Origin: Cyanophora paradoxa CCMP329
Lineage: Eukaryota > Plantae > Glaucophyta
NCBI GenBank assembly: GCA_004431415.1
Contig: QPMI01000170.1
Coordinates: 62,001 to 126,000 of the forward strand
Direction: 5' to 3'
Length of the DNA: 64,000 nucleotides
Shown here piece after piece: positions 18,755 through 45,850 of the stretch (the stretch's first letter is position 1; each line of letters starts with the position of its first letter). Both the position numbers and the translations under genes were made by a program. Under the pieces are notes generated by a model that did not search any database, was not told the DNA's origin, and saw only the letters and a list, made by a program, of their open reading frames with translations.

Positions 18755-19092
18755 CGACCGTCTTCCGTCGTATCGCTCTAGTTTGGTCATCCCTAGCTTT
18801 AGTCCTTCATGATCATGATCTTTCAACCTGTACCATAATGCGTTTTACCACAGACCTGTATAGATAGTGAACCTGTATAGATAGCGGACCTGTATACAGC
18901 TTGTCAATTTGGCTTCTTGCTGTTCGCTTTCAATCAACGACAGTCCACGTGCCACGGTGCACGTGCACCGCCGGGGCCGCAGTGGGCCCAGATATCTCCC
19001 GAGCAAAGCCCGGTGCAGCGCCGGCACTGCTGGCCTACTCGCTAGATCTTGAATTCTACATGCTAGAAGGGCGAGGGCTATGGGGCAAAAGA

Positions 19093-19768
19093 TCATACGC
19101 CGGGGGGCTTGGTGAGGTAGCCGATGCCGATGAAGAACGTAAGCAGCGCGATGAGAGTGAGGGTGAAGTGGTACAGCGACTTCGCCCCCTGCATCACCTG
19201 CGCGCACGGGCCTGAGGAACCTGCGGGTGGCGCACGGAGCTGGGCGCCGGCGCTGCCTAGCCGCGAAACTTAATCGCACCATGTTGCGCATGGCCAGCTT
19301 GGTGAACGAGCCGGAGGGAAGTTCGGTGGGCTCGGAGGTGCCGCTAGTGGCCCCCTCGTCTTGCGGCGCCTCCTCCTTGCCCTCCGCCGCGGCGAAGATA
19401 CCGAACGACCTCCGAGGGGCGCGGCGGGCGGTGAAGCCAGCCGCGAACCTCAGCGGTGTCGCCGTGAACATCGTGTTGCACGCATCTCCAAAGAAGGCGC
19501 GCTGCACGGGCGTCTGCGGCAAGGACACGCCTGCACGAGCATCAGTACGGGGCCAGATCTAGATATGCCCGATGCGCCGGGTAGATATATCATGTTGCGA
19601 GCATGGCGTTGCACACCGCTCGAGCCAGACCGCACGACGATGGAGGCACGCGCCACAGGCGCCGCACGGGCGCACGGGGGCGACAGGACCGCTGCGGGGA
19701 GGCGAGGCATCGGTCCTGGAAAGCACATGCGCGCAGCAGCACGTCTGCGGACCGGGAACGAACGCCAT
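19093..19768 (-). CDS. Plastid-targeted DUF3285-family small membrane protein of cyanobacterial origin, copy 1
   Basis: Spliced transit peptide MAFVPAVLSPPCARAAPVARAS. C-terminus SFTKLAMRNM/VMQGAKSLYHFTLTLIALLTFFIGIGYLTK matches the cyanobacterial KLAMRNMVRKG..SL.HF motif. Confidence 0.8.
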
Positions 19769-19850
19769 ATCAAAATGAAGACAGCAAGGTATACCAGGGG
19801 TACAGCAATAACAGCCGGCGCCTGGCCATTGCCATCAGACGTCGATATCG

Positions 19851-20750
19851 ATGCAAGCGTTCTCGGTTCATCCAGTCCCTCCGGCGCCTTCGGCGCGGTG
19901 CGGCAAGCTCGCTCGAGTGTCGGCCACGTGCACGCAGCGCCGCGACGCCGCGCTCTTGCGAACGCGGCGACGGAACAACGAGCATGCGTTGGCATTCCTG
20001 GGTCATCGCTGTATGTGGAGCGCGGCAGCGCGCGCTGCAACCTCTCTGGACGCAAGAAGCAGCTTCGACAAGGCGCAGAGGGCAAGACGCGCACTTTCTG
20101 TTTCTGCGCAAGCGGGTTCCAGCTCGGAGAACCTCAACGAGGCGCTAAAGGTACACGGGGACGCAGCGCGGCGCGCATGCCCCGCATACGCATGCTCGCG
20201 TAGACATTTCCTTCGCGCAGGACGTTACTGTCTTCAGGGCGAGCGACGGAGCGGAGGTTCCTATCGTCACCCTCTGGGCGGAGAAGCCGACCTGCATTGC
20301 CTTCTTCAGGTTCGCTCGAGCTCAAACTTGCGCGCGCTCAGCGGCTGGCCTCGGGATTAGGGCTCACAGAGTCAGCGGGCAAGGGCCCCAGCGGCTCGCT
20401 GACTCTTAATCTAGCCTACAAGGCTGGAGCTCGTAGAGGCGCCGAGCATATCGCAGCGCCCCAACCCCATATGTCCTCCCTTTCCCGTGCCCCTCCGAGG
20501 CTCCAAGTCAGGTCGGCCCTCTTCACGATGTGTAACCGCCTCCTCGATGCAGGCATTGGGGTTGCGTACTTTGCAAGCAAGTTCGTACCCGTCCCTCTCC
20601 CCCTTCCCCATTCCCACCCCATTCCCACCCCGGCCCCCTCCCGCGGGGTTGAAGCCTCGGAGCGGCTGGTGGCCGCCACCCCGGGGCGGACGGGGCCTGA
20701 TCTCGAGTTTGGAGCAGCAGGCGGAGGCGCTGTCGGGGGTGGCGATGTGA
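19851..20750 (+). pseudogene. 3'-truncated copy of the peroxiredoxin-like gene at the duplication junction
   Basis: Frame ...QAEALSGVA runs into ATG TGA at the junction (20745-20750). Confidence 0.75.
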
Positions 20751-21628
20751 AGGTCACGATCAGCCCTTATCCGATCTCGGGTTCGTTAACGCGCTGCGCA
20801 TCGTCGCCGCGCACGGAAGCGCGCTCCTCACGCTCAAGCGCTCGGTCAGGCTCCAGCATCTTCGTGAACGTGACAGGCGAGTCTTTCCAGCGTTTTCCTC
20901 GCCATTGGAGGTCCCGCTAGGGCAGGCTCCGAACAGCGCACCCTAGCGAACGCACCTTTCGCGCGCGAGATTGACGCCCCTGCAGGCAACGCGACGCGCA
21001 CCGTCACTGGTGGCACGTATTCAGTGACGCTCAAGAAGGCACGTGCTTTTCCAATCCGCTATAGGCTTCGAATTTCCCGCGCGCCAGGCGCTTTTGTCGT
21101 TCTCGCGTGCGCTCACGTCGCCCTTTGCACCTCCGCAGTGGATTTTCACGGTGCTCAGCCTGACGGATAATTTCTGCGCCGTGGGCGAGGGCTCGCACGA
21201 ATGTGAGTCGAATCAAATTGAACTATGAAATGTCACAAGGATGCCGTGGTCGCGCAGGTATGCCCCTGGAGGGCCGCACCAGTTTACTGGACTGCCCCTT
21301 GCCCCCGGGACCCTTCACTTTTCAGGGTGCGTCCGTCGAAGCCTGTTGACTTCGAGCTTGCAATTGCAATCCTCAAGCCTGATGCGCAGCTCGCTGCAAC
21401 GTTCCGGGCTTCGCGCCCTCCGGCTCCTACGGCTTCCAGATCAACGCCGCGGACGATTCGAACGCCCCCCTGTTTTGCCAGAACACCAACGTGCAGGTCG
21501 CTTCCGGCGGGAACGTCCTTCGCCCGTCGTGGGCGAGTTTTCTTAGCAGTGCCCGCGGCGCGCACGCAGCCGCTTCGGACAGCGAGAACGGCGCAGCAGG
21601 CCGCGGGGATGATGAGTACGCGATATAG
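20745..21628 (+). pseudogene. 5'-truncated copy of the ML-domain gene
   Basis: Duplicate of 17871-18754 lacking the start codon and signal peptide. Confidence 0.7.
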
Positions 21629-21966
21629 CGACCGTCTTCCGTCGTATCGCTCTAGTTTGGTCATCCCTAGCTTTAGTCCTTCATGATCATGATCTTTCAA
21701 CCTGTACCATAATGCGTTTTACCACAGACCTGTATAGATAGTGAACCTGTATAGATAGCGGACCTGTATACAGCTTGTCAATTTGGCTTCTTGCTGTTCG
21801 CTTTCAATCAACGACAGTCCACGTGCCACGGTGCACGTGCACCGCCGGGGCCGCAGTGGGCCCAGATATCTCCCGAGCAAAGCCCGGTGCAGCGCCGGCA
21901 CTGCTGGCCTACTCGCTAGATCTTGAATTCTACATGCTAGAAGGGCGAGGGCTATGGGGCAAAAGA

Positions 21967-22641
21967 TCATACGCCGGGGGGCTTGGTGAGGTAGCCGATG
22001 CCGATGAAGAACGTAAGCAGCGCGATGAGAGTGAGGGTGAAGTGGTACAGCGACTTCGCCCCCTGCATCACCTGCGCGCACGGGCCTGAGGAACCTGCGG
22101 GTGGCGCACGGAGCTGGGCGCCGGCGCTGCCTAGCCGCGAAACTTAATCGCACCATGTTGCGCATGGCCAGCTTGGTGAACGAGCCGGAGGGAAGTTCGG
22201 TGGGCTCGGAGGTGCCGCTAGTGGCCCCTCGTCTTGCGGCGCCTCCTCCTTGCCCTCCGCCGCGGCGAAGATACCGAACGACCTCCGAGGGGCGCGGCGG
22301 GCGGTGAAGCCAGCCGCGAACCTCAGCGGTGTCGCCGTGAACATCGTGTTGCACGCATCTCCAAAGAAGGCGCGCTGCACGGGCGTCTGCGGCAAGGACA
22401 CGCCTGCACGAGCATCAGTACGGGGCCAGATCTAGATATGCCCGATGCGCCGGGTAGATATATCATGTTGCGAGCATGGCGTTGCACACCGCTCGAGCCA
22501 GACCGCACGACGATGGAGGCACGCGCCACAGGCGCCGCACGGGCGCACGGGGGCGACAGGACCGCTGCGGGGAGGCGAGGCATCGGTCCTGGAAAGCACA
22601 TGCGCGCAGCAGCACGTCTGCGGACCGGGAACGAACGCCAT
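21967..22641 (-). CDS. DUF3285-family gene, copy 2 (apparent 1-bp frameshift near 22227)
   Basis: Identical to copy 1 except gtggcccctc versus gtggccccctc, which could be a real frameshift or a sequencing error. Confidence 0.65.
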
Positions 22642-22723
22642 ATCAAAATGAAGACAGCAAGGTATACCAGGGGTACAGCAATAACAGCCGGCGCCTGGCC
22701 ATTGCCATCAGACGTCGATATCG

Positions 22724-24257
22724 ATGCAAGCGTTCTCGGTTCATCCAGTCCCTCCGGCGCCTTCGGCGCGGTGCGGCAAGCTCGCTCGAGTGTCGGCCAC
22801 GTGCACGCAGCGCCGCGACGCCGCGCTCTTGCGAACGCGGCGACGGAACAACGAGCATGCGTTGGCATTCCTGGGTCATCGCTGTATGTGGAGCGCGGCA
22901 GCGCGCGCTGCAACCTCTCTGGACGCAAGAAGCAGCTTCGACAAGGCGCAGAGGGCAAGACGCGCACTTTCTGTTTCTGCGCAAGCGGGTTCCAGCTCGG
23001 AGAACCTCAACGAGGCGCTAAAGGTACACGGGGACGCAGCGCGGCGCGCATGCCCCGCATACGCATGCTCGCGTAGACATTTCCTTCGCGCAGGACGTTA
23101 CTGTCTTCAGGGCGAGCGACGGAGCGGAGGTTCCTATCGTCACCCTCTGGGCGGAGAAGCCGACCTGCATTGCCTTCTTCAGGTTCGCTCGAGCTCAAAC
23201 TTGCGCGCGCTCAGCGGCTGGCCTCGGGATTAGGGCTCACAGAGTCAGCGGGCAAGGGCCCCAGCGGCTCGCTGACTCTTAATCTAGCCTACAAGGCTGG
23301 AGCTCGTAGAGGCGCCGAGCATATCGCAGCGCCCCAACCCCATATGTCCTCCCTTTCCGTGCCCCTCCGAGGCTCCAAGTCAGGTCGGCCCTCTTCACGA
23401 TGTGTAACCGCCTCCTCGATGCAGGCATTGGGGTTGCGTACTTTGCAAGCAAGTTCGTACCCGTCCCTCTCCCCCTTCCCCATTCCCACCCCATTCCCAC
23501 CCCGGCCCCCTCCCGCGGGGTTGAAGCCTCGGAGCGGCTGGTGGCCGCCACCCCGGGGCGGACGGGGCCTGATCTCGAGTTTGGAGCAGCAGGCGGAGGC
23601 GCTGTCGGGGGTGGCGGAGGGCCTGCGGGCGTGCGGGGTGGAGCTCGTCGGCGTCGGCAGCGGCACCGTCGAGCAGGCCGCCGCCTGGGCCCAGGAGGTC
23701 CCTTTCGCCGGAGCCGTCCGCACCCCCCCCCCCCCCCTCCCCCCGCCCGCCCGTCCGGCGCCCCTGGCGGCTCCCTCGGGGCGCCCACGCGGGGCCGGGG
23801 TGGGTCGCAGGTGTACACGGACCCCTCCAAGAGCTCCTACGCCGCCCTCGGCCTCGCCGTCCGCCCCCGCGTCCCCGCCCCCGCGCCTTCCCCGCCATCG
23901 CCCCCCCACGCGCTCGCGGCCGCAGAGGGGCCTCCTGACGACGTTCAACCCGGCCTCGCTGGTGAAGACCGTGCAGGCCTTCCAGGCGGGGTACACGCAG
24001 AACTGGGCCATCTCGAGCGAGGCGAGCGGCGGGCGGCGGCGGGCGCGCGGTGCGGGCGGGGCGGGGGCTGAGGGGGCCGGGGCGGGGCGGGGGGGCAGGT
24101 GGACGGGTTCCAGCAGGGCGGCCTCTTCGTGGTGGACACCGACGGGAGCCTCCTCTTCGCCCACAGGGAGGCCCGCGCCGGCGACCACCCCGACCCCCGC
24201 GCCCTCCTCGCCGCCTGCCCCCGCCCACCCCCCGCATCCCTCCCTGTTGACCACTGA
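22724..24257 (+). CDS. Peroxiredoxin-like 2 / AhpC-TSA_2 (FAM213-like) redoxin, probably plastid-targeted
   Basis: MQAF start. Spliced TLWAEKPTCIAFFR/HWGCVLCKQ/QAEAL (CxxC), VYTDPSKSSYAALGL and GFQQGGLFVVD...LFAHRE...GDHP. Confidence 0.88.
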
Positions 24258-29407: not shown

Positions 29408-29933
29408 CTAGACTCGCCCAAGACCATTCTAGTATATCCTGGGGTAGAGGATATATCGGAGTGGCAACATAGATGCTTGCCGCTTGCCCGGGGTACTTCG
29501 TCGAAGTTGGCGGGCTTCGCCTCAGAGCTTAATTCGTAGCCCAGCTTCGTAAGGCTCCGCAGCGATGATGCCAGCATTTTCAGTGGCTCCATTTGCGCCC
29601 GCAGGTCCGTGCAGCGTTAGGGCTTAAAGCGCATTTCACGGCCAGCCGGCTAGCTAGGGCGACGTAGGTCCAGCCTAGAGATGATTGCCGTGCTATCGTG
29701 CGCTCTGCAACAACGTTTGCGCGCTGCAGGGCAGGCATTCGGCGCGTTTCGCTCGCCCATGACCGGTATGCAACGCGCCCCCGCAAGACGGTGCGCGCTT
29801 TTGCGAGCGGCTTGCAGGCCCGCGATCGGTTGGCCAGTCGTCCTTCCGCGGCCGGCGCGTGGCGGCGGCGGCGGCGGTGGCGGCGCGCCAGCCAGCGGCA
29901 TGCGCAGCGCCGCGGTTTGGGGCGGCGGAGGCG

Positions 29934-31152
29934 ATGCTGCGCGACAAAACGGTGGTGATTACGGGGTGCTCGAAGGGCATCGGGGCGGAGTTCGTGCGGC
30001 AGCTCTTCGAGCACCGCGTGGCGCGCGTGGTCGGCCTGGTGCGCGACCCGTCGGCGGCCGGCGTGAAGCGGCTCGAGGCGGACTTCGGCGACAAGTTCGA
30101 GGCCGTGCGCGCGGACGTCGGCAGCGAGGACTCGATCAAGGTGCCGGAGCCCCCGCCCGCAGCCGCGGCGGCGGCGGCCGAGCTCGCGCAGGCGGCGGCG
30201 GCGGAGGTGCTGCGGAAGACGGACCGCGTCGACATCCTCATCAACTGCGCCGGCGTCTGGTCCCGCGCGGGGTTCGACACCGTGCGCCCCTCTCGCCCTC
30301 GCGCGCGCCCCGCGCCGGGCGCCGACGCGGCGTCTCCGGCAGGTGACGTCGGAGCACATGGCGCGCGGGGGCGGGGGGCGGGGGGCGGGGGCGGGCTCTA
30401 AGGGGAGCGCCAGGTGGAGCTCTTCCGGGTGAACGCGCTGGGCCCGATGCTCGTCGCCCGCGAGCTCCTCCCCGCCATCCGCGCCGCCGCCCGCGTCCGC
30501 CCCTCCCCCCGGCCCCGCCCCCCGCCCCCTCATCCGCCCCCAAGGCCGGCGACCACGGCGACGTCCACGCCGGCCTCATACTCAACCTCACTTCGTGCCC
30601 GCCCGCCCGCCCTCCGCCGCGCGGGGCCGCGTCGCTGACCCCGCGGCGGGCCAGGAAAATGGGCTCCACCGAGGATAATTCCTCCGGGAATTCGTACGCC
30701 TACCGCGCCTCCAAGGTGCCTCGCCCCGCCCGGCCGCCCCCGCCGCTGCCGCCGGCACGGGGGAGCGGGGCCGGGGCGGCTGAGCGGGGCGGGGGGCGGT
30801 GCAGTGCGCGCTGAACATCATCAACAAGTCGCTGTCGATCGACTTCGCGCCGGAGGGGATCACCTCCGTCCTCCTCCACCCGGGCTACGTCCGCACAGAC
30901 ATGGCCCGCCCGCCCCTCCCGCCCGGCCCCCGACCCCTCGCGGACCCCCGCCTGAGACACCCCGGGGCGCGCAGACGAGCGGGCAGGGCCTAATCAACCC
31001 CGACGAGTCGGTCCGCGGCCTAATCGGCGTCATCGAGGGCCTCGGTGCCGCGCTTCCCCCCCCTCCTGCCCGCACCGGTGCCCATGCCGGCGGCAGAGTA
31101 CGCGGACAATGGCTGCTGGTTCGACTTCAAGGGCGTCGAGATCCCCTGGTAG
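29934..31152 (+). CDS. Short-chain dehydrogenase/reductase, CsgA/C-factor-like (may have an upstream targeting extension)
   Basis: VVITGCSKGIG, DILINCAG, FRVNALGP, AYRASK (YxxxK), LHPGYVRTDM and the terminal EIPW*. Confidence 0.92.
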
Positions 31153-32190: not shown

Positions 32191-32442
32191 TCGTCCAAAC
32201 TTTCGTCCAACTTTCGTCCAACTTTCGTCCAACTTTCGTCCAACTTTCGTCCAACTTTCGTCCAACTTAAGCTTCCGTCCAAGTACTAGTGCCAGTCGAC
32301 GTCGTAATCCGATGATCAAACCTCAACTTTCGTCCAACTTAAGCTTCCGTCCAAGTACTAGTGCCAGTCGACGTCGTAATCCGATGATCAAACCTCAACT
32401 TTCGTCCAACTTTCGTCCAACTTTCATTCAACTTTCGTCCAA
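32191..32442. repeat. 11-bp tandem array (CCAACTTTCGT)n containing an internal ~60-bp direct duplication
   Basis: Directly visible; ends about 110 bp upstream of the LCIB-like ATG. Confidence 0.93.
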
Positions 32443-32554: not shown

Positions 32555-35520
32555 ATGGCGTTCATCCTCTCCGCACCGGCTTCGGCGGCCCAGCGCGCGG
32601 CGCCCGTAAGCGCGGCCACGGGCTCGAGCTCCCTGCTCCAGTCCATCCAGCACCGGCCCGCGCGCGCGGCTAGCCAGTTCGGTGGCCGGAACACCGTCGC
32701 GCGCACGTTCGACGTGCAGGAGCAGGTGTCGTTCTCGGTCGACTGCAATGCGTACAACGTCAACAGTACGAGTCCCCGCCGCCTGCGCGCATACCTAGTT
32801 CAGACGTCCCTCGTACTCCTCGTGGCTCATTAGTGCTTCTTTCGTTGCGCGCGCACTGGTTTCGCATCGAGCAGTGGCGAACCGCGCCGCCCTGTCGAAG
32901 AAGGTGAACGCCGTCCCGCACGTCGGAGCGCGATGGGGTCTAGCAGATTCGTCCGTGCGCGTGGCTGTCGTTCTCATGCGATATGAACGCAGGTCGACTA
33001 TCACCACCCGGCGGATATTCGTCAGGGCTACGACCCGGAGGTGCGTTTGCCGATGCATGCGGACGGGTCATTTGGCTCGTGGATCTAGGAACTGGACTCG
33101 GCCGGAGAGCTGCAGCGAGCTGTAGTTTATATTCGACGCGCTCCGGAGAGACCGGCGGCGCCGGCGATTCGTAGCGCGCAGCGTTCGCAAACTATTGAGA
33201 GCTCGCCAACCGACGTCGGATGCGCGCTCGCAGGATCCGCACCCGGCGTTCACTCAGGTCATTAACGAGCTCTATCCGGATGCCGTTTCCAGCCAGGATT
33301 TCCTCCGCCAGACCTACAAGGTGCGCTCCCCACGGGACACCGACCGATCCGCGGCTCAACCGCAGTCGCCGTCGTAGGCCCTGCTCAAGCTTGGCTTCTC
33401 GAAAGTGGTGCGAACTGGCTGTGCGTCCTCCGAGGTTGCGCGTCCCTGATCCGCGCCGCAGAACACGCTGCCCTGCGCGGTGCGGCCGTGGAGTTCTGCT
33501 GGGGCGTGTTGACGGCGCAGCTGCAGGTCGCTCACGTTGCGGGGCGCAGACGCTGTGCCGTGACGAGATCTGCCGGCCGCTGGGCAAGGACATCGAGGAC
33601 CTGTTCTGCCGCACGGACGAGGACGAGGCGAACGGCAAGTTCATCCTCAACGCCCTCGCCGGCATCATGAGCTCCGGCCGCACCGCCGTCAAGGCCGCCG
33701 TCTCCCACGCCCCCATGGTCCGCCCCCGAGCGCCACGCCCCGCCCCGACGGCGCCGGGCTGCCCCGCCGACGCCCCGCCCAGATGGACGGCTACGAGCGG
33801 TACCTGTTCATGTCGTTCCCGCACATCGCCATCGACTACCGCGGGCGCGTCGGCATGGTCCGCCGCCCGGGTCGCTCCGAGGTCCGTTCGCGCGCGACGT
33901 GTGCAGGCGGGGCGGGGCGTGAGGCGGGGCGCAGAACTCGCACGCGTGCGGAGCGCTGCTGGGCCTGGAGGACGCGTTCGCCACGGGGGCGCTGCAGACG
34001 CAGCCGGCCATCGACCCCGCGGACCTCGAGATGAGCATGCTCAAGCGCCGCTTCTTCAACCTCGTCCCCCGCGGCGTGCGCGCGCCCCTCCCCCCCCTCT
34101 TCCCGCGCCGCTGGGGCGGCTGGGGCGGGGCGGGGCTGAGGGCGGGGCGCAGAGCAAGCCGAACCTGGTGGAGATCACGGACATGGCGCTGCAGCTGGCG
34201 GAGGAGACGCTCGACAACGTCGTCCCCGAGGTCGTCTCCAGCCGCCGCTGCCACTACGCCGTCCGCGCCCCGCCCCGCCCCGCCCCGCCCCCGCTGCGGC
34301 GCCGGGCTCTGAGGCTGCGGCGCGGCGCGCGGCGGCAGGTCGTCACGGGGATCCAGATCCACGGGCCTGACGGGACCAACTTCATCGCCCCGTCGCGCAT
34401 GTACGCCGTCATCCACGGCAAGCGCCAGGAGATCAACGTCGACGTCCGCCCCGCCCCGGCCCCCCGCCCGCCCCCCGCCTCTGACCCCGGCTCCGGGGGC
34501 GGGCAGTTCACGCCCTTCGCGGTGACCAAGGCGGGGAAGACGTCGACGACGCCGGCGGGCCTGGGCTCGGCGCTGGAGGCGGCGTCGGCGGCCTTCGACG
34601 CGGCCTCGCGCGCCCTCGTGGTGGCCTCGAAGGAGAAGAACCTGACGCCGCGCAAGAAGGCCCCGGCCGCCAAGGCGCGCACCCCCGTCAACGGCGCCGC
34701 CCCCAAGAAGAAGGCCACCTCCTCCCGCAAGAAGAAGGACAACTACGGTCCGCCCCGCCCCGCCCCGAGCGCCCCGCGGCGTGCGCCGGGCAGCGCGGCT
34801 GACGGGCGGGGCAGGCACCTACTCGCCGACGCCGAGCTCGGTCTCGCCGGCCTCGATGTCGACCTCGCCGCTGCCCTACACCCCGACCCCGACCCCGACC
34901 CCCGTGCCCTCCCCGGCCACCTACTCCCCGACCCCCGCCGCCGGCGGCCAGGTCTCCTACGGTCCGCCCGCCCCGCCCCAGCTCGGGCCCGGGCCCCCCG
35001 CGCACGCGCTGACGGCGCGCTGATGGCGCGCAGGCATCGCGTCGCCCCCGGCCGGGTACGAGCCGCAGTACAGCGACTACAGCTACGACGCCGCTGAGAC
35101 CACCTATGCCGACGCCGCCCGTGCGCACCCGCCGCTGCGCCACTCCCCGCCCCCCCCCGCCCCCCCTCACGTCTCGCCGGCGCAGCGTCGGGCTCGAGCT
35201 CTGGGTACAGCATCGCGTCGCCCCCGGCCGGGTACGTGCCCCAGTACGACGACCAGTACGGCTACGACCAGGGCTACTCGTACGACCAGGGCTACGCCTA
35301 CGACGGTCCGCCCCCCGCCCCGCCCCGCGCCCCGCCCCGCGCCTCGCCTCGAGCTCGCCTCACCGCGCGCGCGCGCAGGCTCCGCTCAGGCCCCCGCCTA
35401 CTATGATGAGCCGGCCAGCTCCGGCAGCTATTGTGCGCCCCTCCCCTCCTCTTTTTCCCCCTCCCCGCCTGACGCGTTTCTTTGCGCGCAGCGATCTCCG
35501 CGCCCCCGGCGGGCTACTAA
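32555..35520 (+). CDS. LCIB: LCIB-family (theta-type) carbonic anhydrase homologue with a plastid transit peptide and a long Lys/Pro/Tyr-rich C-terminal tail
   Basis: Transit peptide MAFILSAPASAA. Core LCRDE, GRTAVKAAVSHAP, FPHIAIDYRGRVGMVRRPG, SHACGAL and VVTGIQIHG, with the Cys/His/Cys zinc ligands intact. Confidence 0.9.
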
Positions 35521-35846
35521 GCGTCGGCCGCCCAGCCGGCCTGCGCCCCGAAGGTCGAGCCTAGCCTAGCAGGCCTTCTGTACTCTACCGCCGCAGGCGC
35601 TCCAGCCGGGGGCAGCCTGCTCGGCCGGTCCCGCACGCCGCGCCGTATTCATTGATGCACAGCGTTGTGCACGTGCGATCTGCTGATGTTCAGCTGCAAA
35701 TTGCCTTTTTTTTTGGCTCTGGGAGCTTTGAAATTTTGGTCCCCCACCCCTTGTACTAGTATGATTTCCAGGAATGAAAATGCATTGTGTAATACTTGCC
35801 TTCTAATGCCAAAGACACCGACTTCAATGGACCCACGAGTGCGCGC

Positions 35847-35914
35847 GCGCGCGGAAGTACGCGTGAAGTGGTGGCGGACGGCGGGGCGCTCCTGGAGCTG
35901 GAGCTGGGGGCGCG
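35847..35914 (-). pseudogene. Inverted copy of the transit-peptide exon of the 38034 gene
   Basis: Encodes RPQLQLQERPAVRHHFTRTSAR versus RPQLQLQERPAVRHQFTRTSAR at about 38092-38160. No nearby in-frame ATG. Confidence 0.75.
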
Positions 35915-36118
35915 CGGTCCGGGCGCCTGCTGGCACACCGGCGATTGGAGTCCCGACCGGGGGATGAGCTTGAAAAAAGGTCAAAAAATTACTGGGTTGG
36001 CGCGATCGCGAGGGGGGGGGGTGCGGCGGAACAGGGGGAGCGGAGTGGGGGCCGAGGAGGGGCGCGGGCGGCGGGCGCGGGGAGCAGGGGGGCGGGGGCG
36101 GGAGCGGCGGGCGGCGGG

Positions 36119-37794
36119 TCAGTAGTTCTTGGTGGGCGGGGTGTACTTGGAGAGGTCGAGCTTCTGGAAGTAGGCGATGGTGTGGGCGAGGCCCTGGGCG
36201 AGGGGCACCTGGGCGGGGGCGTGAGCGAGGGGCGGGGGGGGCCGAGGGGGGGAGGGGGCGGGGCGGGGCGCCTTGGGCCTCCACCCGGCGAGCTGGGCGA
36301 AGGCGAGGGAGTTGTCGGGCCTCCGCCGCGTCGGGTCGTCCTCGGGGAGCTCCTTGTGCACCACCCGCGAGCCCGAGCCCGGCGTCAGCTTCAGCACCAG
36401 CTCCGCCAGCTCCTTCATGTTGAACTCGTCCGGGTTCCCCAGGTTCACCGGCCCTGGCCCCGCCCCTCAGCGCCCCGCCCCGCCCCCGCGCCGGGCGCCG
36501 GGAGGGGGGTACCGAGGAAGCCGTCGCTCTGGTTCATCATGCGGACCATGCCCTCGACGAGGTCGGAGACGTACTGGAAGGAGCGCGTCTGCTGCCCGTC
36601 CCCGAAGATCGTGATGTCCTCCCCATTCACGGCCTGCCGCACGAAGTTCGACACCACCCGCCCGTCGTACGGGTGCATCTTCGGCCCGTACGTGTTGAAG
36701 ATCCGGATCACCCTGCGCCCCGCTCGCCCCCGCCCCGCTGCCGCGCCCCCGCGCGCCGGCTGCGCACCGTACTTCCGTCTTGTACATGCGGTTGTAGTCG
36801 AACATCAGCGTCTCGCCCGCCCTCTTACCTTCGTCGTAGCACGCTCGCGGCCCTATCGGGTTAACGTTGCCCCTGTATGTTTCCACCTGCGCGGGGGAGG
36901 GGGGGTTAGGGAGGCGCAGGGCGCGAGGCGCTGCGGGAAAGGAAAGGAAAGAAAGCACTCGCCTGCGGATGCTCCAGAGGGTCCCCGTACACCTCACTCG
37001 TCGACGCCTGAAGAATGCGCGCGCCGTGCTCTCTGCCCCCGCCCAATCAGGGCCCTGCCGCCCACCGCCTCCGCAACCACGGGCCCCACCTTGCGAGGTC
37101 CAGCATGTTCATCGTCCCGATCACTGCGGTCTTCATTGTCTTGACGGGATCGTACTGCAAACGCGGTTGGCCGCCGGGGCAGCGCGCGCGCGCGCGCGCG
37201 CCGACTGACGGACCTGGTAGTGACCAGGGGCGGCGGGGCACGCCAGGTGGTAGATCTGGTCGAGCTTCTCGGGCGAGGCCCACTTTTCCTGCAGCGCAAG
37301 CAAGCACGTAGCTTAGCGGCGGGACGCGGCGCGGGGCGAATGGCGCTGGGCCCGCTTGCCGGCACACTCTAGCTCGAGCGCGACTGAAGACGCAAGACGA
37401 ACCACGACATCGTGCTCGACGAGAGTGAAGTTCGGATGGCTCAGCAGATCTGCTACGTTGCTCACGACTCCCGTGAACATGTTGTCTAAGCCTGGCGAGT
37501 CTCGCGGTCAGCGCGGGCGGATAGGGTGGGCATTATGTCATTGGCCGCTGAGAAGGGTTGCGGACACACAGACGACCTTGTGGCCTTCATTGATGAGGCG
37601 CTCGCACAAGTGGGAGCCGACGAAGCCGGCGCCTCCCGTCTGCGAGGTGGCGCGGAGGGCGGGCACGGGATCAGCACAGGCCTCGAGCGCTGACTCAAGG
37701 AGCGGCGCCAGGAGTCTCTGACGGAGCTGCGAGAGGAGGGCGAGTGGGGGCGGTTGCGGACCACGAGGATTCGTTTCTTTCCGCTTTCGACCAT
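36119..37794 (-). CDS. UXS1: UDP-glucuronic acid decarboxylase (UDP-xylose synthase)
   Basis: [76 protein letters not shown] and DDPTRRRPD. Confidence 0.96.
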
Positions 37795-38033
37795 CTCGCT
37801 GTGTTTGAGGATCCGGGCTGCCAAGTTGCAGGGACAACTTGCCGCGCGCCCGAGGGGGGATGAGGTGGGCGAGAGTACTGTAGCCCCGCTCGAGTCGGCC
37901 AAATCGCAACCGAAAGAGAGGGTACTGCTGTTCGGACTGCGCCGAAAGGCCCAATAACTGGTTTGACAAGTACTTGAGCGGCTGAATTCGAAGCGCGCAC
38001 TCGGGCTCGATCACTCCACAAGCTCTAGAGAAG

Positions 38034-39814
38034 ATGTCGGCCGCCTTCGTCGTCCAGGCCCCCCTCGCGGCGCCCCGCTCCGCCCCTTCCACGCGTCCCC
38101 AGCTGCAGCTCCAGGAGCGCCCCGCCGTCCGCCACCAGTTCACGCGTACTTCCGCGCGCACACGTAGCTTCGATGTCTCCCAGTCCGTTAGCCCTCTCGT
38201 CCTCGCCTCCGGTGCGCCTCGCGAAGCTTCGCGGCGGTTGGGGCGGCTAAGCTGCTGGGGCGCACGCGCCCTCTTGAGTCGGGATCGGGCATGCGTTCTC
38301 GGACTGATCAATATCTTATGATCTTTTCGCAGCCGACAAGAAGGTCGAGACGGCCTTGAGCGGCGCGTCGGCCGCCCTGAAGGGCGCCGCGCGCGCCCTG
38401 AACATCACCGTTGACACCATTTCGACTGCCGCGCGCGCAAGTGCGTGTGAGAATGTAGTCCCAGGCGTAGCGTTGTGCTGGAGGGCTAACTGACGCTGCC
38501 TGCGCGCAGTGTCCTCCGCCGCGGAGTCCGTCGAGGACGCGGCTCGCACCGTCGGTAAGCAAGCTTGCACCTCGCTCGGGGCGATGAGCATCCATCTGAA
38601 CTGTTGCGCGCGCAGCCGGCACGGACAGCTCGTCCTCGTTCAGCTCTGCGGCGTACAGCTCGAGCTCGAGCCAGTCCTACGGCTCTTCCTCCAGCTGTGA
38701 GCGCCCGTTTTCTGCCCACGCCCTTTCAGCCTTGTCGACACTTACGATTCACCAGCGATCGCGGCGCCCCCGTCGGGCTACAGCGCCCCGACCTACTCGG
38801 CGCCGCCGGTGACCGTCGGCTCGGGCTACTCGATCGCGTCGAAGCCGGCGAACATGAGCCCGCCGCGCTCGACTCAGATCACGCCCTCGGGCCCCGGCTA
38901 CAGCATCGCGTCGAAGCCGATGAACGTCAGCCCGTCGCGCTCGACCACGCAGACCCCGTCGGGCCCCGGCTACAGCATCGCGGCCAAGCCCGGCACCTAC
39001 GGCACCACGAACTACTCGCAGTTCTCGGCCCCCGTCGCCCCCGCCGCCCCGGCCTACAGCGCCCCGGCCCCGGCCTACAGCGCGCCCACCAGCTGTGCGC
39101 CCCCCGCCCCCGCGCCATGCGCGCCGCACGGCCCTGACGGGGTCGCCGCGCAGCCATCGCGGCCCCCCCGTCGGGCTACAGCGCCCCGAAGCCGGCCCCC
39201 GTCCCCGTCAACGTCGGCACCGGCTACTGTGCGCCCTCGTTCCCCCCGCCCTCACTCTTCATTCTTCTGACTCGCGCCCAGCGATCGCGTCCAAGCCTGC
39301 CGGCTACACCGCCCCTGCCCCGGCCCGCGCCCCTGTGCCCTCGGGCTCCGGCTACAGCATTGCTTCGCCCCCGGCCGGCTTTGTTCCGCGCCCGGTCTCT
39401 CCCCGCCCGATGGCTCCCCGCCCGGTCTCCCCGGCCCCCGCCTACGGCGCTCGCCCCATGTCGCCCGCCCCCGTTGCCCGCCCGCCCGTGCCCTCGGGCT
39501 CCGGCTACAGTATTGCTTCGCCCCCGGCCGGCTTTGTTCCGCGCCCGGTCTCTCCCCGCCCGATGGCTCCCCGCCCGGTCTCCCCGGCCCCCGCCTACGG
39601 CGCTCGCCCCATGTCGCCCGCCCCCGTTGCCCGCCCGCCCGTGCCCTCGGGCTCCGGCTACAGCATTGCTTCGCCCCCGGCCGGATTCGTTCCGCGTCCG
39701 GTCTCGCCGGCTCCCTACGGCCGCCCCGTGTCTCCCCGCCCGGTCGCGCCGTCCCGGGCCCCGGTCCCGTCCGGCCCCGGCTACTCGATCGCGGCCCCTC
39801 CCGCCCGCCGCTAA
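38034..39814 (+). CDS. Plastid-targeted, intrinsically disordered Pro/Ser/Ala/Tyr repeat protein with about 10 (GY)SIA[SA][PK]P motifs; candidate Rubisco-condensate linker
   Basis: Transit peptide MSAAFVVQAPLAAPR, a short Ala-rich helix, then a repeat region without Asp or Glu. It contains 153-nt (51-aa) tandem units starting at 39335, 39488 and 39641. Confidence 0.8.
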
Positions 39815-42298: not shown

Positions 42299-45200
42299 AT
42301 GCCGGGCGGGGACCAGCCGTCGTTCGAGCGCTCCGTCCTGATCTACAGCAAGGACCAGGTGCTTCAAAGCAAGCCCTGTGCATTGACGCAGCTCAGGCGG
42401 GCGCGGGCGCTGCCGCAGGTGTGCGTGCACCCCTCCGATGACAGAAGCGAGCGGATCTGTGGCAAGCTCACACTTGAAAAAGTGCCCGCTTACAGCGCCG
42501 TATTCGTACGTACGCTGAGCGCCGCGCAGCTGTCGCAAAACGCGATCCTCCTCGAGTGGAAGCCGGCGCAGCTGCAGACGCACGGGCGGCAGGCGCAGCA
42601 CATGAAGCCTCCGTATGCTCAATCGATGTCCTCCGCGTCTTCCTCGGCGCCTCCAGCCGGCGATGAATTTGTGATGGTCTCTCGCGGTTTATTCCGCCGC
42701 CACGCGGACCAGAGCGCCACAGGCGAGCCGCCTCCTCAAGAAGCGGGTGATATCTCTTGCTCAGCTCCGCAGCAGGGAGCTCAAACGGAACCCGCGCGAC
42801 GGCGCCGGCCCCGCAGCAGTCGGTGCCGGCGCCGACGCCGGCAGCGCCGCGCTCGCATAGCAGCGCCGAACTGTACGCGGTCCGCGTGATGGTAACAATT
42901 TTGAGTATATAACTCATTAGGTAGAGCATTTGACTTTTAATCAAGTTCTCTTAGGTGAGCGATATCCAAAGCTTCCGAAAGTTCATCCCCCCGCCGGTCT
43001 GTCGTGCACCGCTCCGCGGGCCGCGCGGCGCTGCATGAGGCGTCCCTTGGAACGCAGCTCGGTGGCTTCCCGCAGCTCATCATCAAGACGAAGAGCGGGC
43101 TCGGTGCGTCACCCCACCTCCCCTCCACCCACCTGCCCTCCCTCGATCGCCTAACACGGCCCTCTGCTCAGCGTACCCGCCCCTGTACTTCCACGACAGG
43201 CAAGGGCCCCCGCCGCCAAAACCGCCGCCCTTGCACCGCGTCGATCCGGCCGCAGCGGCCTGAAGGATTTCTTCAACGCTATGAAGGAGCACGTGACGGT
43301 CGCGCGGTGCGGCGGGCCGGCGGCGCGCGCGGCGCGGGGCGGGCGCGGGGGCGCGACGGCGGGGGCGGCAGGTCGCCGGACGACCCGAACGAAATTGAGG
43401 TCCTCTGTGAGGATGGGGACCTCCAGGCGAGCCGCGCGCCCCGCCCCCGGCCCCCCTCGGCTCCACTCCCCTCAAAGCGACCGCAGGGGACGGGCGGGGA
43501 GGGGGCGGGGGGCGTGCGGGTGGGGCCCCGCGTCGGCCTCTCCCCGGGCGCTTTCCGAGACCTCGTCGCGATGCAGGCGCACGCCGCGCCCCGCCCCCGC
43601 CGCCCCCCGCCCCGCCCCATGCCAACCCACACCGCAGCGCGCCCTGAGCGTGGGCGCCACCCCCGGCTCGCCCCCCGCGGCAGGCAACCCAGTCGAGAAG
43701 GTACGAGTGACGAACTGGGCTTCACTGCACTGCTGATGCGCCGCGCAGCTCGTGTGGTCGGGCCTTCGCGAGCTCTCCAAGGTTACTCGCCTTGCCCGTC
43801 ACGGCGCCCGTGCGCCCGCCCGGCCTCCAGCCGCCCCCGCCCAGCACTGAGTCGCTCGCACAGACCAACTCGCCGGCGGGCTGCGCGGCCTGCAGCAGAG
43901 CATGGAGGGGGCGGCCCGGCGCGCCGTCTCGCCGCAGCCGCCGGCGCAGCGCGGGGTGGAGGACGGGGAGGGGGCCGGCAGGCCGGCGGCCGCCGCCCAC
44001 GGGGACGACTTCGTTCTCATCGAGGACGCCGTTCGCCCGCCCGCCGCGGGGCCCTCCTCTGGCCCTCACCCCGCCGCAGTCGACGCCTCTCTTCGGCCTG
44101 CGCCGGCCCCGCGGGCCCGAGCTCTCCCCCGAAGAGTGGACGACCCTCGTGCCTCCTGCCGCCCGCCGCCCCGCCCCCGCCGCCGGAGGGGGCGACGGGG
44201 CGGGCAGGTGGACGAGGAGGGGCGGGTGCGGGACGCGGGACGCGTGCGGGCGCGCATCGCGAGCGGCGGCCTCTCCGAGGAGCTCCGGCCCCTCGTCTGG
44301 CGCTTCCTCCTCGGCCTCTACCCCTGGGACTCCTCCTACGCCGACCGCGAGCGCATCGACGCCCAGAAGCGGCGCGCCCGCCCGCCGCACCCCGCGCGCA
44401 CCCCCGCCGGCGTCGGCGGCTCACGGGGCGGGCAGGGCTGAGTACGAGGCGGTGAAGCAGCAGTGGGCGTCGATCACGGGGGCGCAGGAGGCGCGCTTCG
44501 CGAAGTTCCGGGAGCGGCGCTCCCGCATCGAGAAGGACGTCGTCCGCACCGACCGCGAGCTCGAGTTCTACGCGGGGCCCGACGACCAGAACGCCAACCT
44601 CGCCGCCCTCCACTGCATCCTCCTCACCTACGCCTTCTACAACTTCGACTTGGGCGCGCTCGCCCCGCCGGCCCCGCCGGCCCCGCCCGCGGCGCCGGCT
44701 GAGGGGCGCGGGGGCCCCAGGCTACTGCCAGGGGATGAGCGACATGGCGGCGCCGATCCTCTACGTCGTGCGCGACGAGGCCCTCGCCTTCTGGTGCTTC
44801 TGCGGGCGAGCCACTCCTCCTCCTCCTCGCCCCGCCCCGCCCCGGCCCCGCTGCTCACGTGCGCGGCGGGGCGGGCCGGCAGGCTGCTGGACGGGCGGGG
44901 GATGGCGAGCAACTTCACGAAGGACCAGGCGGCGATGCAGGCGCAGCTCCTCGAGCTCTCCAGGCCCGCGCCCCCCCCCCCCCTCTGCCGCCCTGGGCTC
45001 CGGGGGCGCGGCGCGGGGCCGGCTGACGGGGCGCAGCATCGTGCGGACCGTGGACCCGGCGCTCCACGAGCACCTCTCGATGAACGGCTGCGGCAACTTC
45101 TTCTTTGCCTTCCGCTGGGTCGTGCGCCCGCCCGCCCCCCCCCCCCCCCCCCCCCCCCCCCCGCGCCCCCGGCCCCGTCCCCGTCGCCCCTCGACGCTTC

Positions 45201-45850
45201 GCGCTCCGACTCGCGCCCGGCGCAGCTCATAATCTTCAAGAGGGAGTTCGAGATGCACCAGGTGCTGCGGCTGTGGGAGATGGCGTGGAGCAGCGAGCTG
45301 CCGCGCCTGCCCCTCTACCTCGCCGCCGCACTCATCGTCCAGGCCAGGCGCGCCCCCGCCCCGCCCTCGCCCTCGCCCCCGCGCCCCTCGCCCGCCTCAA
45401 AGCCGGGGGCGACGGGGGCAGGGAGCGGATCGTGAAGGGGCGGATGGAGTTCGACGAGGTGCTCAAGTTCGCCAACTCCCTCGCCGGCCAGCTCGACGTC
45501 GACGAGTGCGCCCCGGGCCCCGCCCCGCCCCCGCCCCGCGCCCCCCGACGCCCCCGGCCCCCAGGTGCATCACCGCGGCCGAGGCGATGCAAAGGCGGCA
45601 CGCCGCCCTCCTCGAAGGGGCGCACCCCCGCGCCCCTTCTCCCACCCCTCCCGCCCCCTCGCCGGCCCCCGCCGCCCCTGCTCCGGCCATCCCAGCCCCC
45701 TCGACGGGCCCCGCGACCGCCGGCCCCACGTCGCCCCCGCATGACTCCTCTTTGGCCCCCGCGTGCCCTTCGGCGGCCCCAGCCGCTTCAGGATCCTTAA
45801 GCTCATCGGCATCAGGGACCGCCGCCCCCGACCAGCATCCACAAACGTGA
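42299..45850 (+). CDS. TBC1D15/Gyp7-like Rab GTPase-activating protein (N-terminal PH-like domain plus TBC domain)
   Basis: LIYSKDQVCVHP, GGLSEELRPLVWRFLLGLYPWDS, IEKDVVRTDR (Arg finger), GYCQGMSD (Gln finger) and FFAFRW-LIIFKREF. Confidence 0.93.

Follow-up and report, generated by a model that had tools for sequence, protein, structure and literature searches.

Results

Two neighboring genes of Cyanophora paradoxa encode a common motif

This study concerns two nuclear genes of the glaucophyte Cyanophora paradoxa CCMP329, both of which reside within a 64,000-nucleotide stretch of contig QPMI01000170.1 (positions 62,001 to 126,000 of the forward strand), hereafter referred to as the window and used for all coordinates. 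Gene A (32555..35520, + strand; 17 exons, 573 aa) encodes an LCIB-family (theta/beta-type) carbonic anhydrase (CA), and gene B (38034..39814, + strand; 7 exons, 452 aa) encodes an unannotated protein consisting of a transit peptide, a heptad helix, and a basic disordered tail. The two are separated by a 2513 bp gap containing a gene on the opposite strand. An earlier note on this DNA had described a short motif in both products and interpreted it as an address for the Rubisco body of the plastid, through which the CA is recruited. The motif is indeed shared by both genes, ~2.5 kb apart, and in the numbers given there, as a six-frame scan together with the spliced models yielded three copies in the tail of the LCIB protein and 10 in B.

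The consensus of the motif is G-Y-S-I-A-[SA]-[PK]-P-A-G-[YF], with the I and the second P invariant across all 13 copies and the Y missing from two. The copies of A are found at I479, I516, and I566 of its 573 residues, the last of them forming the C-terminus. Copy 1 (34958..35059, +) and copy 3 (35429..35517, +) are split by phase-1 introns at 34962-35033 and 35433-35491, respectively, and copy 2 (35206..35241, +) has 13/14 residues in common with copies 7-9 of B. The B copies extend from I139 to I445 of 452 residues at a spacing of 24-51 aa, and the last one ends 3 residues short of the C-terminus. Copies 1-6 of B (38693..39307, +; I at 38758, 38833, 38905, 38977, 39156, and 39284) include three that are split by phase-1 introns (copies 1, 5, and 6) and three that constitute a 72-bp repeat (copies 2-4). 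Copies 7-10 (39323..39811, +; I at 39359, 39512, 39665, and 39788) are arranged as a 153-bp (51-aa) tandem repeat of 2.5 copies that are 96% alike, with copy 10 near the C-terminus. Beyond the two genes, the strict pattern [SG]I[AS][SA][PK]P has no other occurrence on either strand of the 64 kb.

Between the tail of A and B, the best ungapped 14-residue identity is 13, compared to a maximum of 11 in 1000 local composition-preserving shuffles, and none of 20000 shuffles of the A tail yielded more than one motif copy, against the three that are present. When same-residue codons were paired between the A and B copies, 135/216 pairs (which are not independent) were identical versus 120 expected from codon bias, and the spacers between the motifs have diverged to opposite charge, being acidic in the A tail and basic in the B tail. 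With its silent sites close to saturated and its residues nonetheless retained, the motif is under constraint at the protein level.

Gene A encodes an LCIB-family protein with a motif-bearing tail

The A product begins with a predicted plastid transit peptide (32555..32749, +, end approximate) bearing a Phe at position 3, assigned from its sequence and the F-rule for Phe-type plastid transit peptides (PMC7038456, PMC4510345). It is followed by a PF18599 LCIB_C_CA domain (33285..34413, +) recognized by both profile and alignment, which scores 165 bits over the full profile length against a curated cut-off of 25, matches the Chlamydomonas LCIB structure with an E-value of 1.7e-35, and keeps all three zinc-ligand positions: C144, H211, and C235 align with the LCRDE, FPHIA, and ACGAL segments of LCIB/LCIC. 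The profile match, the Cys-His-Cys ligands, and the CRDE segment thus all uphold the family assignment made earlier, but since some purified LCIB proteins are inactive in vitro, CA activity cannot be assumed for A. Past the domain lie an alanine-rich heptad helix (34567..34638, +; L371, F378, L385), also present in a second LCIB paralogue and in B, a lysine/arginine-rich patch evident from composition (34630..34740, +; 14 K/R in 39 aa), and finally an acidic, Tyr-rich disordered tail (tail pI ~4). PDB sequence matches of A are confined to the domain (to approximately residue 351), with nothing significant matching the tail, and an AlphaFold model based on two sequences was of no use (pLDDT 32). 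The second LCIB paralogue, tig00000851_g4886, is 61% identical to A over the aligned region and shares the post-domain helix, but lacks the motif. It also features a Pro/Tyr stretch as well as a basic patch, and a short segment containing a Trp (RDW) forms its end.

The modeled A product is identical to EukProt EP00741 tig00000718_g3709.t1, and B corresponds to the old gene model 12104_cds:4323. Exon 2 of A has two possible end donors, resulting in a protein of 573 or 579 aa, and the motif is untouched either way. The modeled GT-AG joints were confirmed for both genes by RNA-derived contigs (four studies, four RNA-type runs), namely for all 6 introns of B and for the LCIB core and tail joints of A. 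The concern that transcripts might lack the tail exons of A can be set aside, as a single 1955-nt RNA contig runs from the LCIB catalytic domain through the last motif exon. By arithmetic, its coordinates leave exactly 409 nt, which is the length needed by the tail exons, and the tail splice joints are likewise represented. Directly upstream of A (32191-32442) are tandem repeats with units of 11 bp (7 and 4.3 copies) and 72 bp (2.2 copies, 100% alike), and two RNA contigs of A appear to start inside of them.

Gene B encodes a basic, disordered repeat protein

The transit peptide of B (residues 1-58; 38034..38207, +) ends in V-L-A, and the mature N-terminal peptide has been observed by TAILS (see below). 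A helix of 50 residues follows (38335..38620, +), which is alanine-rich and comprises 7 heptads with large hydrophobic residues at positions 68, 75, 82, 89, 96, 103, and 110. The remainder of the protein is a 340-residue tail (pI 10.7), and no acidic residue occurs beyond position 115. The pI of B is 10.5-10.8, and its composition is dominated by P (23%), S (19%), and A (16%) without a single Trp. No folded domain was detected in B, either by Pfam or as a significant PDB match, and a single-sequence AlphaFold model of the last exon (pTM 0.12) was assigned no secondary structure, which is weak evidence for disorder. The tail contains 11 [GS]Y[GS] triplets. In the last exon (39323-39811), eight R-P-x-S-P units are interspersed between the motifs, and the tail as a whole has 15 SP/TP sites, which could possibly serve as kinase sites regulating condensation.

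A shared helix and intron position suggest common ancestry

In 5/13 motif copies, a phase-1 intron interrupts the codon preceding the motif I. Such introns account for 2/4 of the tail introns of A (p ~0.003) and for 3/3 in B (p ~3e-5), which points to a single ancestral exon junction having been copied within and between the two genes. The helix is a second shared element. Large hydrophobic residues are spaced seven apart, through seven heptads in B and through three in either LCIB, and the periodicity peaks at 3.5. The B helix opens with the pattern of the LCIB helices: queried with both of these, it came out as the top non-self match among 92,865 windows. With the LCIB paralogue as the sole query it ranked only sixth, and scores of this kind are inflated by alanine bias. 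These helices probably form a coiled coil that could join B, its paralogue C (see below), and both LCIBs, thereby offering a recruitment route that does not require the motif.

Given the shared intron position, the shared helix, and the adjoining genes, common descent of A and B is very likely. In its overall layout, B looks like an LCIB protein minus the catalytic domain, and with helix, motif, and intron position all in common with the LCIB tail, B may have arisen in this way. Ancestry might even be the entire explanation for the motif: B and C would derive from an LCIB tail by exon duplication (or A would have taken exons from B), the LCIB copies would have no targeting role, and B and C would be generic disordered proteins, such as stress or nucleoid proteins. 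The other LCIB paralogue, which manages without the motif, is compatible with this scenario. However, A has preserved three copies of the motif, one of them as its very C-terminus, despite silent sites near saturation and spacers of opposite charge. Its retention in the face of such divergence indicates that descent accounts for its origin, but not for its preservation, and we therefore consider ancestry alone to be an improbable explanation.

An abundant paralogue of B is present in the cyanelle proteome

The cyanelle proteome of Koehler et al. 2015 (PMC4510345) provides label-free quantities for intact and Triton-washed cyanelles from cells grown at 5% CO2. The plastid location previously supposed for both products is corroborated by their detection in these purified organelles. 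B was quantified in intact and in Triton-washed cyanelles, periplasm-free ones among them, and the N-terminal peptide recorded for it at position 58 has the mass of the peptide starting at S59 of our model, immediately after V-L-A, a sequence consistent with the V-x-A cleavage pattern reported in the same study. The TAILS table of that study does not class B as a cyanelle protein and flags only its Phe. Both LCIBs are listed as well, A at 1.4-2.8 fmol and the motif-less paralogue at 7.5-8.4 fmol in intact and Triton-washed preparations.

The same data revealed an unannotated paralogue of B encoded outside of the window, referred to here as C (9509_cds:2612), which has the same helix, 6 motif copies, and a near-identical C-terminus (its sequence was read and its motifs counted by eye). 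C additionally contains five INHGY repeats not found in B, possibly a second sticker or address, and its old gene model seems to include unspliced intron sequence immediately ahead of one motif, where the introns of A and B also lie. The motif is specific within the cyanelle proteome table, as the string GYSIA is found in only two of its sequences, B and C, which together account for all 6 occurrences; the sequences of this table end at ~400 residues and the old gene models lack the A tail. One IASPP match lies within a dihydropyrimidine dehydrogenase domain and was judged to be due to chance. Rubisco activase (26296_cds:6567), which the earlier note had named among the proteins to be scanned, shows only partial likeness: the listed part is devoid of the motif, its C-terminal end being beyond the table. 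The N-terminal extension after its transit peptide contains GGYSAPP and GGYSDGW, which partly resemble the motif and the YSAP repeats of B and C. A is the one enzyme found with the motif.

In intact/washed cyanelles, C amounts to 26.1/21.1 fmol and B to 1.5/2.4 fmol, compared to 95.6/66.9 for RbcL, 80.4/63.5 for RbcS, and 51.5/38.2 for activase (Table S2 of PMC4510345), with PRK at 18.8 fmol and a table mean of 14 fmol. This corresponds to 2.3-2.8 molecules of B plus C per L8S8 holoenzyme, nearly all of which is C (B alone, ~0.1-0.3), and to ~2 motifs per RbcL, with the caveats that the values are label-free, that RbcL may be underestimated (activase/RbcL = 0.54), and that B yields few tryptic peptides. 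B increased 2.4-fold upon Triton washing, but this was given no weight, since many low-abundance proteins behave likewise. The abundance of the family suits a Rubisco linker, with B as the minor paralogue and C as the better candidate for the organizer and the likely main scaffold.

The quantities also permit another interpretation, in which the motif docks onto a complex on the thylakoid side, such as the phycobilisome, FNR, or a membrane protein, with B and C serving as linkers or anchors and with A tethered to the surface of the thylakoids, hydrating CO2 in a stroma that is alkaline. The amount of C resembles that of phycobilisome linkers and is half that of FNR. In plants, Tic62 and TROL anchor FNR through Pro/Ser-rich repeats, and some red-algal rod-core linkers consist of a long helix with extended loops. 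Even so, we found no match to the solved phycobilisome linkers or to the Tic62 peptide (best E = 1.4, not significant), and ten interchangeable copies joined by variable spacers suit a many-site target like L8S8. The FNR family itself possesses a similar flavin strand (R-x-Y-S-I-A-S; RLYSIAS in FNR), but the position two before the Tyr is G, S, Q, or A in 13/13 motif copies and no FNR domain is present. As the defining Arg is missing from all copies, the YSIAS likeness to the cyanelle FNR strand is treated here as coincidence. A thylakoid-side partner accordingly strikes us as quite unlikely.

Searches beyond Cyanophora paradoxa

Among the matches listed by word-indexed, HMMER, ESM Atlas, Pfam, and PDB searches, no relatives of B or of the A tail were found outside of C. 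paradoxa. These blanks are weak, since the queries are of low complexity and subject to length limits, B was queried exon by exon or as open frames, and B itself was not returned. HMMER searches over 1.84 billion representatives produced two matches, both of which are unrelated repeat proteins, and a metagenome match to the DNA pattern was dismissed as chance (an AT-rich contig with Thr replacing Ser). Across 185,579 prokaryote genomes, there were 84 single-copy DNA matches to the motif, none repeated and no more than expected by chance, including three in cyanobacteria that fall in stop-bounded frames of only 9-34 codons. With prokaryote matches at chance level and no Pfam match to SSUL domains or CsoS2 repeats, neither a carboxysome scaffold (CcmM, CsoS2) nor a cyanobacterial origin of the motif was retained. 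In the literature searched, which comprised few subscription papers and none of the older central-body studies, neither a glaucophyte linker nor any of these proteins was found to be described.

Surroundings of the two genes

The gene between A and B (tig00000718_g3710; 36119..37794, - strand) resembles NAD-dependent epimerases/UDP-glucuronate decarboxylases, has no motif, and is probably unrelated to the A/B system. It is oriented head to head with B, with ~240 bp separating the start codons, and hence a promoter may be common to both. Among the neighbors at 29859-31100 and 43800-45400 are genes for a short-chain dehydrogenase and a protein with a RabGAP-TBC domain, and the few neighboring frames that were scanned gave no sign of a broader cluster of CO2-concentrating mechanism (CCM) genes. 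Farther upstream, open reading frame positions and identical translated segments of ~18800-20900 recur at ~21700-23800 with an offset of 2873 bp, suggestive of a recent tandem duplication.

Discussion

The current study identifies a small protein family of C. paradoxa that combines a repeated motif with a plastid location, and in which a member of an established CCM enzyme family carries the same motif. According to the 2019 genome paper, the Rubisco body of Cyanophora is a mass of Rubisco without a shell that touches the stroma and is not crossed by thylakoids. For a body of this type, both a linker and a nearby CA would be expected. Since C and B match known linkers in architecture as well as amount, and since the only enzyme with the motif comes from a CCM family, we favor, with a modest degree of confidence, a model in which the abundant C together with B forms a multivalent linker or scaffold of the Rubisco body, to which A is recruited by the same motif.

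In this model, B and C would first be imported into the plastid and relieved of their transit peptides. Their N-terminal alanine-rich coiled-coil helix would probably mediate oligomerization, and the 6-10 GYSIA[SA][PK]P motifs on long, basic, disordered tails would bind Rubisco weakly, thereby cross-linking holoenzymes into the central body or pyrenoid. A, via its three motifs and shorter helix, would be drawn into or onto the Rubisco body and would probably bring the motif-less LCIB paralogue along. Presumably, A could then supply or recapture CO2 within a body through which no thylakoid passes, provided that it is an active CA working in the appropriate direction. B conforms to general linker expectations in that it has no folded domain, a motif spacing of 24-51 aa (the FLIPPer criterion is 20-120), and a basic pI (PYCO1, 10.03). 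It exhibits neither the helical sticker nor the sequence homology of the green-lineage linker subtype, and no homologue was found in the searches described above.

Several observations weigh against this model. The motif contains no Trp or Arg and has a Pro-Pro, unlike the helical stickers of EPYC1, CsLinker, and SUPA1 or the KWSPR motif of PYCO1, and the similar Tyr motif of PYCO1 (GTGYNP) is a self-sticker that is dispensable for Rubisco binding. Quantitatively, C is likewise on a par with the phycobilisome linkers (25-46 fmol) and with one half of the FNR amount (FNR, 49.5 fmol), RbcL may be underestimated in view of the activase/RbcL ratio, and the quantities come from cells kept at 5% CO2. 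No motif occurs in the more abundant LCIB paralogue or in the portion of activase that is listed, and no homologue turned up in another species, albeit in weak searches with low-complexity queries. The notion of the motif as a Rubisco-body address that recruits a CA is supported in part, by plastid presence, tail transcription, specificity, and linker-like abundance, and needs amending in that the more abundant LCIB paralogue does without it.

It is also conceivable that the motif acts in the same organelle, but upon a different partner. It could be a prion-like self-sticker of Tyr, Ser, and Gly or could bind the LCIB domain, such that B, C, and the LCIBs would co-assemble via helix and motif into a mesh or rim surrounding the Rubisco body, which retains the CA and curbs the escape of CO2; the linking of Rubisco would then fall to another protein. 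The 11 [GS]Y[GS] triplets of the B tail, the homotypic GTGYNP repeats of PYCO1, the helix common to both LCIBs, B, and C, and the charge complementarity between the acidic A tail (pI ~4) and the basic B tail all accord with such a mesh. So does the peripheral layer formed by LCIB/LCIC in Chlamydomonas, for which a barrier role has been proposed. On the other hand, C is ~2.5x as abundant as both LCIBs combined and matches the stoichiometry of Rubisco instead. Furthermore, it is the I and P of the motif that are invariant rather than the Y, which suggests a defined binding pocket over a generic aromatic sticker. For these reasons, we view a partner other than Rubisco as rather unlikely.

Comparisons to characterized systems place the proposed Rubisco linker among familiar designs. 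Like EPYC1, CsLinker, and SUPA1, B and C are basic, disordered, plastid-imported repeat proteins with motifs 20-120 aa apart, a motif shared with a client, and ~2 linkers per holoenzyme (B plus C here, as for CsLinker in Chlorella), and the pyrenoids of Chlamydomonas and Ulva are organized by just such sharing of the linker's motif with client proteins. They differ in their Pro-rich, non-helical motif without Trp or Arg, in their coiled-coil-like helix, and in having an LCIB CA as client. PYCO1 of Phaeodactylum tricornutum resembles B in its pI of ~10, its low-complexity Tyr/Gly/Ser/Pro repeats, its short, non-helical motifs, and the presence of a motif near the C-terminus, but it binds Rubisco via KWSPR, which no other protein was found to contain, and uses its Tyr motif for homotypic contacts, whereas the Cyanophora motif is shared with a CA. 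In the alpha-carboxysome, CsoSCA is a CA with a disordered Rubisco-binding tail, and the proposed recruitment of A beside a disordered scaffold is reminiscent of the CsoSCA-Rubisco-CsoS2 arrangement. There, however, different motifs engage an overlapping site inside a shell, while in Cyanophora the motif is identical, the CA belongs to another class, and no shell exists. With LCIB/LCIC of Chlamydomonas (PF18599; PDB 5K5W, 5B5X), members of a CCM protein family found at the pyrenoid periphery, A shares the domain, the zinc-ligand positions, the occurrence as two plastid paralogues, and an extension past the domain, to which A adds the heptad helix, the basic patch, and the acidic Tyr-rich tail with three motifs. 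The C. paradoxa family would work like EPYC1, CsLinker, PYCO1, and SUPA1 in having a shared address motif, and like the CsoSCA tail, yet no homology to any of them could be detected.

A stronger version of the model sees in B and C the organizer of the Rubisco body of glaucophytes, acting through a Rubisco-binding motif of a new, non-helical type. The scaffold may then be a former LCIB protein that lost its catalytic domain, and the same motif would co-package the CA. We advance this version tentatively, as a possibility that falls short of being probable. The sharing of the motif first described in the earlier note is confirmed, and its reading as an address is partly supported, strengthened by the plastid proteomics, with the emphasis now moved to C.

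The nature of the central body of glaucophytes, relic carboxysome or pyrenoid, has been a matter of debate for decades. In the 2019 genome paper it figures as a pyrenoid lacking both shell and thylakoids, for which neither an organizer nor a resident CA is named, and a 2026 cross-lineage review of pyrenoids makes no mention of glaucophytes. The family described here is a strong but unproven candidate for holding the glaucophyte CO2-fixing body together, and having C, B, A, and an 8-10 residue motif in hand turns the question of the central body into a peptide-binding and immunolabeling experiment. If the proposal is correct, a linker would be available for the third primary-plastid lineage, which would bear on the timing and the number of origins of Rubisco condensates. 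Under the stronger version of the model, the body itself would be a eukaryote-built hybrid serving a cyanobacterial-type Rubisco, combining a pyrenoid-type linker with a carboxysome-type co-packaged CA. A matrix that tethers its CA by a motif and does without membrane tubules would offer a simple design, of interest for engineering a CCM into crops.

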